Assembly (NCBI RefSeq): GCF_031769215.1
Contig: NW_026781986.1
Location: forward strand, 496,001-560,000
Source: Ylistrum balloti
Taxonomy: Eukaryota
DNA length: 64,000 nucleotides
Direction: 5' to 3'
Shown here: positions 164-5,530 of the stretch, in pieces
Layout of the letters: each line of letters opens with the position of its first letter
How positions within the stretch are numbered: position 1 is the stretch's first letter
Position numbers and translations under genes: made by a program
The notes under the pieces: generated by a model
Told to the model about the DNA's origin: nothing
Database searches by the model: none
Seen by the model: the letters and a program-made list of their open reading frames with translations, nothing else

Positions 164-3100
164 TTGAATCTTTTTACTGTAATGGTCCTGAATTCAAATA
201 ATTTTTCACAATATTCTCGCAATTCATTTGGATCTGAAGTATAACAATAAAGAAACACATTACTAATATTTCGTTATTTCAATCTACATTGTAATTATTA
301 TCATTAATTTAACATTGTAGTACAAGTAATTGATGAACAGAATTTGAAATATGATTTTGATTCATTTGACTTTTAAATCAGCTATACATAGAAATATTTG
401 AAACTATGTATATGTCACACTTCAGTTTAAAAAAATATGCTGGCACTGGATCTTTCTTCATCTCATCAGTCATTTCAAAATTATCCAAACTTTACATTTA
501 ACAGCTCAAGAGCTTTTCTTGTACCATCGTTTGTATAAGAGCTCAGGAACAAAAACTTTTGTTGATGAGACAAAAAATCTTTGATAAAGCTATTTTAAGG
601 TTTTTTGCAGCCCTCTTTGATATATAAACTGTGTGTTCCTAACCTACAGTATTCTGTTTCTTTCTGTCTTCTGCGTACTCTATCTTGAAAGGTGGGGCTA
701 TCACTGTGTACCTTACCTACAGTATTCTGTTTCTTTCTGTCTTCTGCGTACTCTATTTTGAAAGGTGGGGCTATCACTGTCTACCTTACCTACAGTATTC
801 TGTTTCTGTCTTCTGTGTACTCTATCCTGATAGGTGGGGCTATCACTGTGTACCTTACCTACAGTATTCTGTTTCTTTCTGTCTTCTGCGTACTCTATCT
901 TGAAAGGTTGGGCTATTGATGTGTACCTTACCTACAGTATTCTGTTTCTTTCTGTCTTCTGAGTACTCTATCTTGATAGGTGGGGCTATCACTGTGCACC
1001 TTACCAACAATATTCTGTTTCTTTCTGTCTTCCATGGCTCTCACTGTGTACCTTACCTACAGTTTTCTGTTTCTTTCTGTCTTCTGTGTACTCTATCTTG
1101 AAAGGTGGGGCTATCACTGTCTACCTTACCTACAGTATTCTGTTTCTTTCTGTCTTCTGTGTACTCTATCCTGATAGGTGGGGCTATCACTGTGTACCTT
1201 ACCTACAGTATTCTGTTTCTTTCTGTCTTCTGCGTACTCTATCCTGATAGGTGGGGCTATCACTGCCCCATCTACAGTTGTTACTAATGGTGCCTCTTGT
1301 TCTCCAGTTGATGCTGAACCTGATGTTCGAAGAGAAATGCATAAGCTAATGGTTAATGTCACTTTTTAAATTGTTCTAGTAAAAACAATTAGCTGTTTGT
1401 GATAAGTCTTTAGTCCTCATAACACAACGTGACATTTTTTTCTTTGTCTTGACATTTTGAAAATAAAAGTGTGCTTGAAGAATTATTTTCTACATATTTT
1501 CGATTAGAACATAATAAAGCAGTTAAGGACATAGAATCAGTCAGGCACTTTCTTTGTATCTTCTGGACAGATTATAGTGGTACAAGTGAAATAATAGAGA
1601 GAATGAAAATTACTGAGGTGTAAACTACACACAGTAATACCTGTACCATTTGTTTCACCATTAGGTATTAGCTCTGTTTGTGGTGGTCCTGTTTGTAGTG
1701 GCCGTTCCGGTTGCAGTGACACTAGTTGAGGTGGCTGTCCTGGTTGTAGTGACTCTGATTGAGGAGGCTGTTCTGGTTGCGGTGACTCTGGTTGTGGTGG
1801 TAGTTCTGACTGTGGAGGTTCTGGTGGAGGTAGTGGTGGTAGCTCTGCTTCCACTGATTCTGTGGGTTTATCTGAATTCTCACCATTAAAGACAGTTTTG
1901 TCCTTCTGTTTCTGGAATTGCTGAGTATTGGAATTCTTCTCCTTCTCTAGCTCTTTTCTGTACTGCAGACAAGGAACAGCACTTACCGGAATGTCATGTT
2001 TCTGAAAAAAGATCAAGATTTAAACCTTAATATGAAGAAGCCTCAACAAATTTATACACATCTCATGAAACCAAAGAGAATTAAAAACTCTCAACAAATA
2101 GCAGAATTAGACTAAGAACAAACTACAAAATGACAAAGGGTCATAACTCTGTATATGAATGACATATTTCCAGCAGAAACAATTTCTGCATGTTACAGTC
2201 ATTCTAAGAAGTAATTTATTAAGATAATTGACATGTGTATGTGACAGCTTGTCCACATATTATTCTCTGTCAGTAAGAAGTTGGTAACAGTAAACATATG
2301 ACCTTAACCTAGAAAATGTTTGTAAGACACGGATGACCCACCCTAATTTATACTATTTGATGATAAATCTCTATAAAAAGTTACGATATCATTGAAATCC
2401 TAAAACACAACTACATCCAAAGTATTGTCTACACTTACCTACAAATTTATGTAAAGTTTTACCTAAATCCCTTCTGAAATAGAGTCACTAGTCAATATAG
2501 AGATGAAAACATAGATCTAGGATGACTACATATCCCATCCCGTAAGATGAAAGCAGCGTGAAAATAAAGCAATGACAAATAAAAGATACGAGGTGAAACT
2601 TTCAATGATCAAATGGGAAACTTAGGCTTTAAGCAGATACAGAAAATTAGAAAATAAGATAACCATTTGTTTTTAGCAAAATTTCAGAATGTTTATAAGG
2701 GACATGATGTTTATAAGCCAAATACAGGTAAATGTACATGTAAACTAATGGGAAAGAATATTTCATATGCCCTTGTTATCTTAAACAGCAAAACCGAAGA
2801 GAGCAAGACCTTATGTGACCAGAAAATCCAGGCAAACTTTTAAAGAATATATCATTATTTTTGAAGTCTGAAGTCAACCTGATGTAGCATGTTTTCATCA
2901 AACTGGAAAAAGGTTCAAAAACAAAGTTTGTTTAATAACTTACCTTACATAAATACCTATTGTTCCAAACTGTCAATATCTAAATATCTACAATATTGTT
3001 AAAGAAATGCTTATTCATAAGACAAAGTAATATCTCAACTCCAGTAATAAAGTTAGTTTGACCTCAATCCATTGTACGTTACCCTGACACTGCCTGGTCC

Positions 3101-4837
3101 GAGAAAATAGGGACGAGCTAGTGTGCACACTCGAGATGTTTTGTGGAGGTATACAGGCATGCCGCTGTTGTGGGTGATCACTACCCAGCCCTCAGGCAAC
3201 CACTCAAATGGGTTATTTCCCCTTTCTGGAAAGAGTAAAACATTACTGAACCTGTCATGTACTTATACTTAAATCATAATTACACCAACTTCACATACAG
3301 TTACTACGTCTTTTATACCAAACTTCAGAAATTGAAACATTGAACAGATATATTTTTCTGTATATAAGAGCACAACAAGTATAGAATATCTAGTCTATAC
3401 ACAATACAACAAGACTAGTACTGTTACCAGTTTGATACAGCAGTTATATTTGTTTGAACCAATTTTGCATCTATTAATAACAAATCTCTAGCAATTACAT
3501 ATTATTTCATGTCATATATTATAAACAATTTAGTTTTAAAAAACTGAGAAAAAAAATTAAAAGAGTATGTTTTCGTTTTAGATTTCCAAAAATTTACCTG
3601 TCAGGATAACTTTTTCTTTTTGTATAGGACAGTCTGCTGCAGTACGTCGTTCAAAGCCCTCATCAAGCCAGGCGTAAATTTCACTGTCTTCAAGATCATC
3701 ATCGCTGTAATATTCACCAGCATCGTTATCTCCTTCCACATCCCCCAGGTCATCAATAATCTCAAACTCTTGGGTTCCATCTGCAGGTTCCTTGGACACA
3801 TTCTCAACACTATCAGCACGAAGGAACTTGGCTGGCATTTCTTCTTCAGACTCCTCATCTTCCTTTTCCTCTACTTCAGTATGGGACCGTTTTGTAGATT
3901 TTCGTGTTTCAACTTCCTTCCTGTCAATTTCTTTGTCCTCAAGCACTGTTAAAATCACACTCTGTCAAATCATACTTAATTCAGCTCTTACATAGGATTT
4001 TGGAGTAAAATAGAAGTACAGAAGTGTACACTAGCCGAACGAGGATACAGATTTTTTTAATCAAGAGGATATACTTAAACAATGGCTGTCTAGAATTTTG
4101 TCCATTTCTGTATTGTATTACCTACTGAAGTACATATCTAGCCTAAAATATCAAATCCTTTTTCAGTAAATAATAAATTAATAAGGTGATGAATGATTTG
4201 ATCTTTCAGAGCAAAGGCGATATTTTCTTATACTGAAATCTTAATCAATAAATACTTGTTTTATTTTCCCAGTCAATACAGACACAGTTTAGCCTCTTTA
4301 AAATTAACATATATAATTTCAATTGTGTTCCCAGTCAGCCTTCAGCAACAGTTTACAAAGTAGAATTAAAATACCAGATTTTTAAAAATTCCAGCACAGA
4401 ATTGCTCTATGGAGGTTGATTCAAGCAGTCACTATTACTACGGATGAAACCATTGTTCCATTCTTTACATTACCTGAAGCACTGTCATCCGTCTCATTTA
4501 ACTCTGCCTCTGACACAATTTCACCATCCGACTCAAAATCCTCATCTTGACCGTTACTTGCTATTTCACCATCTGATTCAATGTCCTCTCCTGGGCCGTT
4601 ACTTGGTTCAGATGTTTTTTCTGTCTCTGTTAACTTTTCTAGATTTGGTTCTAATGCAGTTACAGCACCCTTAACACTATCCACTTCTGATTCTATCTCC
4701 CCTTCCTCCAGATCTCCATCCCACACCTCTGACGTCACTTTCCCACCATTATCATAGCCAAAGTCCAACCTGTCAGATATGTGATTGGACGTTTGCGTTG
4801 ACGATGGTGGTATTACAGGATTGAGCTCAGCATCCAT
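164..4837 (-). CDS. DGCR8: Microprocessor complex subunit DGCR8/pasha, 5' portion (6 coding exons; dsRBDs lie off the left edge)
   Basis: Coding exons 4837-4474, 3945-3598, 3225-3083, 2001-1641, 1319-1203 and 233-164, all GT-AG and phase-consistent. The translation contains the WW/RNA-binding heme domain ([60 protein letters not shown], with the heme-ligand PCL motif) and [23 protein letters not shown], both matching DGCR8/Pasha. Confidence 0.96.
636..1266 (-). repeat. ~73-bp minisatellite made from a DGCR8 exon 3' end plus its 5' splice site (about 9 donors)
   Basis: The CCTTACCTAC-type motif (reverse complement of GTAG|GTAAGG) recurs at 638 (variant), 711, 784, 853, 926, 999 (variant), 1051, 1124 and 1197. 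Spacings are 73,73,69,73,73,52,73,73. Confidence 0.95.
4743..4810 (-). ncRNA. pri-miRNA-like hairpin B in the first coding exon of DGCR8 (mir-1306-like)
   Basis: Minus strand CCACCAUCGUCAACGCAAACGUCCAAUC-ACAUAUCUGACA-GGUUGGACUUUGGCUAUGAUAAUGGUGG folds by hand into about 24 bp with a 12-nt loop. The position matches the vertebrate DGCR8 CDS hairpin. Confidence 0.7.
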
Positions 4838-5066
4838 TGGTCCCGAGTCGTACAACCACTATAGTGTGTATGTGTCACATATATAAAATTCTTTAAGTCT
4901 TCTTAATGAATGATCCACACAATGATAGAAACAAGTCAAAACACTTGTGCTGCATGTATTCTGATGTCATTACACATTTTACCAAACAAGAAAATTTTCC
5001 TTGTTTTATTTACACCTATTAAAGGGAGACAATTTCAATGGGTAAATAAATAGTTCTGGTGAAAGA

Positions 5067-5143
5067 TGCACACGGTCGGAGTACAAGCAAAGGTTAAGAT
5101 TTTAGGTAGACACTTCACCTTTACCAGTACACCCCACAATGCA
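5067..5143 (-). ncRNA. pri-miRNA-like hairpin A in the DGCR8 5' leader
   Basis: Minus strand UGCAUUGUGGGGUGUACUGGUAAAGGUGAAG-UGUCUACCUAAAAU-CUUAACCUUUGCUUGUACUCCGACCGUGUGCA gives about 27 pairs over a ~31-nt stem. The loop starts with UGU and CACC (CNNC) follows the 3' arm. The hairpin starts right after a pyrimidine tract and AG acceptor (5145-5144). Confidence 0.72.
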
Positions 5144-5530
5144 CTACAAAGTAAGAAGACTTATCAGAAGATGAGATCACAATACAACAGATTGAATGTT
5201 TTGGATTTACTTTGAAAAGATGAAATATTACAAACAACATGGACACATACTTGCATTTGAAATATGGTTGATCTTCTGCAACTTAAGCAAGATAAAATTT
5301 GATCTAGCTTCAGGGATCAAGATTATATTAGACCTACTATCCCCAAAGCTTCCACATGTAGCCTAGTCACGACAATCAATGATAAAATAAGATGGTATAA
5401 TTCAGACAAAATAGAAAGTGAAAGGTTTGTATAAATGCATTGACCAGATTTAGATAAGACTTTCAACCGCAAAATTATCGCCAGTTGTTTATATACGCAT
5501 GTACAAAGTTCATTGAATCTCGCAGCTCAC

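Follow-up and report, generated by a model that had tools for sequence, protein, structure and literature searches.

A mir-1306-like hairpin within the coding sequence of DGCR8 in the scallop Ylistrum balloti and in other invertebrates, with evidence for selection on RNA structure

Introduction

Does the hairpin that vertebrates carry within the coding sequence of DGCR8, and known there as mir-1306, have a counterpart among invertebrates and, if so, is it maintained as RNA or simply as peptide? The question was raised by a stretch of 64,000 nucleotides (nt) from the genome of the scallop Ylistrum balloti (NCBI RefSeq assembly GCF_031769215.1, contig NW_026781986.1, positions 496,001 to 560,000 of the forward strand), referred to below as the window and numbered from its first letter. 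On its reverse strand, a short hairpin lies within the initial coding exon of the gene for DGCR8, a subunit of Microprocessor (Drosha-DGCR8). We present evidence that the RNA structure of this hairpin is under selection in several animal phyla, and that it is likely to be a distant relative of vertebrate mir-1306.

Microprocessor autoregulation by means of hairpins in DGCR8 or pasha mRNA is known from vertebrates and flies. In mammals, Drosha cleaves both of the DGCR8 hairpins on either side of the start codon, thereby limiting DGCR8, and mir-1306 receives cluster assistance from the second hairpin, mir-3618, together with ERH and SAFB (10.1101/2025.09.23.678008; 10.1101/2025.09.09.675111). 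Of the two, mammalian mir-1306 is described as the less favourable substrate, its lower stem being weak, and the fly and mammalian hairpins are described as having a common layout without being identical, the hairpins themselves not being conserved between the two (10.1101/2025.09.09.675111), a description that does not decide between an ancestral loop and a convergent one. The hairpins of Drosophila pasha (Kadener 2009; Smibert 2011; dme_422/dme_474, Mohammed et al.) follow the same logic of Drosha cleavage and homeostatic feedback, but both are located in the 5' untranslated region (5'UTR) and they are unrelated in sequence to the scallop hairpin.

Full-text literature searches yielded no report of mir-1306, or of a hairpin in a DGCR8 coding exon, outside the vertebrates, although the MirGeneDB node of origin for MIR-1306 was not established and curated invertebrate copies are therefore possible. 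MirGeneDB 2.1 added MIR-1306 as 'DGCR8 exon-encoded' and did not comment on its age. Elements of this kind have been described before; the apparent novelty lies in extending this one to a minimum of five additional phyla and in demonstrating that RNA pairing dictates the peptide.

Position and Fold of the Scallop Hairpin

A search with the exon encoding the WW domain yielded a protein of 778 amino acids, named by NCBI 'microprocessor complex subunit DGCR8-like isoform X2 [Ylistrum balloti]', to which the exons in the window are 100% identical and which begins with the translation of exon 1 (Table 1). The host gene of the hairpin is DGCR8.

The sequence-only reading of this locus had described a 68-nt hairpin starting about 27 nt after the ATG, with defined base and upper stems and a 12-nt loop, in an otherwise low-complexity N-terminus, and all of these features were borne out. 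Read along the minus strand, from 4810 to 4743, the base stem CCACCAU/AUGGUGG is followed by the pairings GUCA/UGAU, GC/GC and AA/UU and then by the upper stem GUCCAAUC/GGUUGGAC, which is capped by the loop. The folding energy obtained with RNAfold is -26.5 kcal/mol, compared with -12.9 +/- 2.6 kcal/mol for dinucleotide shuffles (z = -5.26), and none of 200 shuffles folded as well. When a context of 501 nt was folded, the hairpin was unchanged in both the minimum free energy structure and the centroid structure. Given this z value and the folds obtained for 10 species, the size and stability are those of a single hairpin resembling a precursor microRNA (pre-miRNA). A chance hairpin is ruled out by the dinucleotide shuffles together with the conservation described below. 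Outside the hairpin, exon 1 is acidic and shows little conservation.

The limits of the element vary slightly with the method used, extending over 4740-4814 for the Rfam match and 4742-4810 for our own covariance models. Among species, the conserved part consists of about 27 positions in each arm and a variable terminal loop of 12-15 nt, encoding four to five variable residues.

Similarity to Vertebrate mir-1306

A permissive cmscan search of window positions 4300-5300 against all 4227 Rfam families gave RF01014 (mir-1306) as the best family for 4814-4740 on the minus strand (30 bits, E 3.8e-4), with the match covering the full model, 1-72; the antisense strand scored 20.5 bits. Alignment of both arms to the Rfam consensus requires no gaps and keeps the reading frame. 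The codons of scallop P-P-S-S-T-Q-T-S-N and L-D-F-G-Y-D-N-G-G fall on those for vertebrate P-P-P-P-L-Q-T-S-S and M-D-V-G-S-G-G-D-G, and the corresponding peptides, PPPPLQTSS..MDVGSGGDG, are found near the DGCR8 N-termini of frog, teleost, chimaera and ray. The elements PP..QTS and.D.G...G are thereby in register, by codon and by frame, with the DGCR8 N-termini of fish, frog and shark. The scallop hairpin and vertebrate mir-1306 agree in the gene that hosts them, in exon, in strand and in frame.

Two similarities noted earlier, an 11-mer, GCAAACGUCCA, shared by the 5' arms (scallop positions 4796-4786) and 3' arms that agree at 19 of 25 positions, both hold against the RF01014 consensus printed by cmscan. 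By alignment to this consensus, the stretch equivalent to miR-1306-5p would be located at about 4807-4786.

The two hairpins also resemble one another in general architecture. Vertebrate mir-1306 (RF01014; MirGeneDB MIR-1306) likewise has the size of a pre-miRNA, its loop is small and its lower stem poor, it shares with the scallop hairpin the 3'-arm sequence UGGAC.UUGGCU in addition to the 5'-arm 11-mer, and in both animals a second hairpin is located upstream in the leader. They differ in that the scallop loop is 3 nt longer, the scallop base stem is shifted outward, and the distance from the AUG is 27 nt in the scallop compared with about 120 nt in human.

Hemichordates provide a link between these forms. 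Their peptides, for example PPLPQHQSSDNAGMDDSSGSDG, are intermediate between those of vertebrates and scallop, and the coding-sequence hairpin of Saccoglossus (L003 1545-1616) scores 37 bits on mir-1306.

Orthologues and Covariation across Animal Phyla

Ten further DGCR8 loci were fetched, from Lineus (L001), Priapulus (L002), Saccoglossus (L003), the amphioxus Branchiostoma (L004), Mytilus californianus (L005), Mizuhopecten (L006), Argonauta (L007), Limulus (L008), Haliotis asinina (L009) and Ixodes persulcatus (L010/L011). Protein searches revealed that the sole conserved feature of DGCR8 residues 1 to about 180 is the short motif encoded by the hairpin, of the form PP..Q(T/M/S)S(N/S), five to seven variable residues, and then (R/G)LD(F/I)...GG. 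In nine of the ten fetched species, representing Mollusca, Nemertea, Priapulida, Chelicerata and Hemichordata, the codons of the motif fold into the same hairpin (-19 to -36 kcal/mol), with the two halves of the motif forming the arms and the variable residues between them forming the loop. Its distance from the AUG ranges from 15 to 183 nt among species and from 15 to 27 nt in bivalves.

The motif is recognisable in 58 of 320 collected proteins, most of which are DGCR8 homologues. Carriers among the molluscs include bivalves (scallops, mussels and oysters), cephalopods and the gastropods Haliotis and Gigantopelta; others are two nemerteans, Priapulus and chelicerates (horseshoe crabs, ticks, spiders and a sea spider), while three hemichordates carry a form intermediate between those of protostomes and vertebrates. 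It was not seen in the examined proteins of insects, crustaceans, myriapods, nematodes, heterobranch or caenogastropod snails, or amphioxus, and these absences are provisional because annotated N-termini may be wrong. Four spider proteins (P0083, P0084, P0183 and P0104, from Argiope, Nephila, Larinioides and Uloborus) carry the motif twice, which suggests that the hairpin has been duplicated in spiders.

On the scallop hairpin, our covariance model R1 scored 85 bits for the sense strand and 37 bits for the antisense strand. As an independent check, a further model, R3, was trained on five molluscs only and searched against 122 kb of loci from outside that phylum. With it, the highest-scoring match on the sense strand coincided exactly with the predicted site for Lineus (58 bits, E 5e-12), Ixodes (39 bits, E 4.5e-7, in genome and transcript alike), Limulus (34 bits, E 7e-6) and Priapulus (32 bits, E 3e-5). 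The evidence therefore forms a chain, extending from vertebrates to a hemichordate and the scallop through Rfam, and from molluscs to a nemertean, chelicerates and a priapulid through R3, with the same exon, frame and peptide register in all of the linked taxa.

Covariation in the 5' coding sequence of DGCR8, proposed earlier as a check, was examined in an alignment of 10 species made with plain MAFFT, and not fitted to structure, from which the consensus was derived with RNAalifold. Compensatory changes that maintain the structure were found across five phyla. The consensus has 21 pairs, with 91.9% of cells paired and two-sided changes in nine of the pairs; none of 500 shuffles matched the observed value for even one of five measures, and when the partner was slid by 1-3 columns pairing fell to 27-41%. 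The alifold energy is -21.0 kcal/mol for the sense strand compared with -11.1 kcal/mol for the antisense strand, and the alignment contains 20 G-U cells against five A-C cells, which indicates that it is the sense strand that is structured. An element on the antisense strand is ruled out by this excess of G-U over A-C together with the strand scores of Rfam, R1 and alifold.

Selection on RNA Structure Rather than Peptide

A conserved hairpin that is also the only conserved peptide in its region could owe its persistence to either. That the linear motif PP..Q.SN...LDF...GG serves a protein function, with the hairpin arising as a by-product of codon usage, gains some credit from the motif standing alone in the first 180 or so residues and being recognisable in many proteins. 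For each species, the fold of the native codons was compared with those of 1000 synonymous recodings of its peptide, drawn at random. All 10 species gave the better fold with their native codons (z -1.9 to -4.3); a fraction of 0-0.059 of the recodings was at least as stable as the native sequence, and in nine of the species this fraction does not exceed 0.028.

Synonymous sites lead to the same result. Between Ylistrum and Mizuhopecten, codons for the same residue differ at 0 of 21 positions in the hairpin and at 20 of 53 in the remainder of exon 1 (Fisher p 4e-4), a suppression of synonymous substitution of the kind that the sequence-only reading had proposed as a check. Nucleotide differences between these two scallops amount to 3/69 within the hairpin, all of them in the loop and internal loop, compared with 59/237 outside.

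Moreover, residues of the lower stem change in pairs that preserve pairing. Pair 10-62 is U-A in molluscs, where a Ser codon lies opposite an Asp codon, and C-G in Lineus, Priapulus and Saccoglossus, where Pro lies opposite Gly, such that both amino acids are altered and the base pair is kept. In the lower stem of Priapulus, Leu-Pro codons CUGCC pair with Gly-Ser codons GGCAG. The residues encoded by the loop, in contrast, vary freely in sequence and number. It is the RNA structure, and not the peptide, that is selected: conservation of the peptide alone is ruled out by the recoding results and the frozen synonymous sites, and we give the protein-level explanation as a whole almost no credence. 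Since the recoding, synonymous-site and paired amino-acid tests all favour RNA, the peptide motif looks like a shadow of the RNA structure rather than its cause.

Table 1. Features of the DGCR8 locus in the window.
Feature	Position	Strand	Basis or remark
Exon encoding the DGCR8 WW domain	3083..3225	-	Basis of gene identification and of orthologue retrieval
First coding exon of DGCR8, 121 codons + 1 nt	4474..4837	-	GT donor at 4473-4472
mir-1306-like hairpin, 68 nt, in DGCR8 coding sequence	4743..4810	-	Fold, Rfam match, conserved structure
Hairpin 3' arm, encoding (R)LDFGYDNGG	4743..4770	-	Fold, Rfam alignment; 19/25 match to vertebrate consensus 3' arm
Hairpin terminal loop, 12 nt	4771..4782	-	Fold, alignment
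Hairpin 5' arm	4783..4810	-	Sequence, fold, Rfam alignment; contains GCAAACGUCCA (4796-4786), identical to vertebrate consensus
DGCR8 start codon	4835..4837	-	Protein starts MDAELNPV
Long, strong 5'-leader hairpin; genomic distance upstream of the ATG, about 230 nt	5064..5149	-	Context fold

Elsewhere in the DGCR8 gene region, downstream, tandem repeats at window positions 595-1362 generate many near-identical short open reading frames on both strands.

The Leader Hairpin and the Two-Hairpin Layout

A second and stronger hairpin is present in the 5' leader close to the coding-sequence hairpin (-30.6 kcal/mol, z -4.1). It is clearly conserved in Mizuhopecten and can be aligned with sequences of Mytilus and Haliotis, and comparable hairpins occur upstream of the ATG in these three molluscs as well as in Ixodes (also in transcript L011), Priapulus, Lineus and Saccoglossus. 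Six leader hairpins align to a consensus of 26 pairs with 12 two-sided changes, each having been picked as the best hairpin upstream. A model of the protostome leader hairpins, R2, recovered only its own training sequences and did not find that of Saccoglossus; a mollusc-only nhmmer profile did not significantly find the leader hairpins of tick and priapulid; and RF04152 (mir-3618) had no match in window positions 4300-5300 at E<=10. Because these searches gave no support, we do not claim shared ancestry of the leader hairpins across phyla, and beyond the molluscs it is the layout that seems to be common.

The comparison with vertebrate mir-3618, a 5'UTR hairpin that aids mir-1306, is therefore one of layout: the scallop likewise has a long, stable leader hairpin, but one that does not match the model. 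The only taxon to match mir-3618 is Saccoglossus, at the equivalent place in its 5'UTR (L003 1137-1229, 47 bits, E 3e-9). As Saccoglossus kowalevskii DGCR8 also matches mir-1306, both vertebrate hairpins are recognisable there by their sequence models, and the complete two-hairpin module therefore predates the vertebrates within the deuterostomes. In the scallop, the leader hairpin is a possible candidate for a 'helper' of the coding-sequence hairpin.

There may be a small intron in the scallop 5' leader, from about 5017 to 4858 on the minus strand, bounded by AG|GUGUAA, which resembles a donor, and CUAUAG|UGG, which resembles an acceptor; its splicing would place the two hairpins about 95 nt apart in the mRNA.

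Origin of the Element

The inference of deep, bilaterian homology made from the scallop sequence gains support from the full-length RF01014 match, the common gene, exon, strand and frame, the scores of the Saccoglossus intermediate and the covariation across five phyla, and for these reasons homology of the hairpin to vertebrate mir-1306 is a supported reading of the sequence comparisons. The element probably originated at or before the protostome-deuterostome ancestor.

Several results weigh against such an ancient origin, and some of them would be expected if the protostome hairpin were independent of mir-1306 and had arisen as a convergent feedback hairpin, as seems true of Drosophila pasha. 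The scallop score of 30 bits is far below the RF01014 gathering score of 70, and on that criterion the hairpin is not a member of the curated family, which was built from vertebrate sequences; it is better described as a distant orthologue. RF01014 did not report the copies of Mytilus and Limulus even in 600-nt searches, in Priapulus it reported the antisense strand only, and in a 54-kb search it had no match in Lineus or Ixodes. The mollusc-only model R3 found nothing in Saccoglossus or amphioxus among the 122 kb searched, and the link between protostomes and deuterostomes therefore consists of two Rfam matches together with position, frame and peptide. No copy was detected in the 14-kb amphioxus locus by R1, R3 or Rfam, and a guessed site at L004 1654-1728 does not fold. 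Given this absence, and the motif being unseen in insects, crustaceans, myriapods, nematodes and heterobranchs, the hairpin is dispensable in many lineages. Covariation, moreover, was counted per sequence and not per event, and several of the two-sided changes are probably single events on deep branches.

Convergence would nevertheless have to account for the same exon, strand and codon register, for the 11-nt identity in the 5' arm and the 19/25 agreement in the 3' arm, for a graded series of peptides running from vertebrates through three hemichordates to protostomes, and for a Saccoglossus locus that matches both vertebrate models, and we regard it as very unlikely. On balance we lean towards a joint reading in which mir-1306 is ancient and its RNA pairing has dictated the sole conserved peptide of the DGCR8 N-terminus; independent losses of the element would have followed in Pancrustacea, in nematodes, in some gastropods and in amphioxus, in flies the loop would have been re-established by 5'UTR hairpins unrelated to it, and in spiders a duplication of the coding-sequence hairpin may have occurred.

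In amphioxus (Branchiostoma lanceolatum), the first intron of DGCR8 carries two other hairpins, mir-4877 (L004:2654-2740, 108.9 bits) and mir-4879 (L004:3407-3481, 105.2 bits), both above the Rfam gathering scores. With the coding-sequence hairpin seemingly missing, these intronic microRNAs (miRNAs) may provide a different coupling of Microprocessor activity to its own transcript.

Proposed Function

The invertebrate hairpin has the anatomy of mammalian mir-1306 and is accompanied by a strong leader hairpin, and from this homology and layout we infer Microprocessor cleavage, negative feedback and a helper role for the leader hairpin. The coding-sequence hairpin would be a deliberately poor substrate: when Microprocessor is abundant, it would bind and cut the mRNA of its own subunit within the first 100 nt of the open reading frame, and the cut would destroy the message and hold the level of DGCR8 steady. 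Because its conserved part matches a pre-miRNA in size and lacks a reliable lower stem, the hairpin would probably depend on the leader hairpin (5064-5149) for efficient cutting, as mir-1306 needs mir-3618 in mammals.

A canonical primary miRNA transcript has a stem of about 35 base pairs, including a lower stem of about 11 base pairs below the cut site. When 25-nt flanks were included, no consistent basal extension of the coding-sequence hairpin was found, a result that also counts against cleavage and that would suit a selected RNA structure with another job, whether tuning of translation initiation or early elongation, editing, localisation, or the binding or titration, without cleavage, of DGCR8 or another double-stranded RNA-binding protein. 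Such a role would agree, too, with a structure that is evidently selected but known here from its sequence, and with its proximity to the AUG in bivalves. Set against this are the variation in AUG distance among species, which does not fit an initiation effect requiring a fixed distance, the equally weak lower stem of the vertebrate homologue, an established Drosha substrate, and the second strong hairpin just upstream in many of the examined taxa, as in the mammalian cleavage module. Another job for the structure is, in our view, unlikely, though less so than either convergence or a protein-level cause, and we consider it quite probable that the best explanation overall is a mir-1306-like hairpin that is cut by Microprocessor to limit DGCR8.

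Significance

A mir-1306 orthologue under selection at the RNA level in five phyla argues that both the feedback loop and the hairpin are ancestral to bilaterians. If this is correct, mir-1306 would rank with the oldest miRNA-like hairpins that have been conserved, and no other would be known to be kept within protein-coding sequence across phyla; the results suggest that miRNA catalogues should date MIR-1306 to well before the vertebrates, if they do not already do so. Oysters, tick cell lines and Limulus are possible experimental systems for an ancient cluster-assistance circuit. The locus also provides a clean natural case in which RNA structure constrains an overlapping amino-acid sequence.

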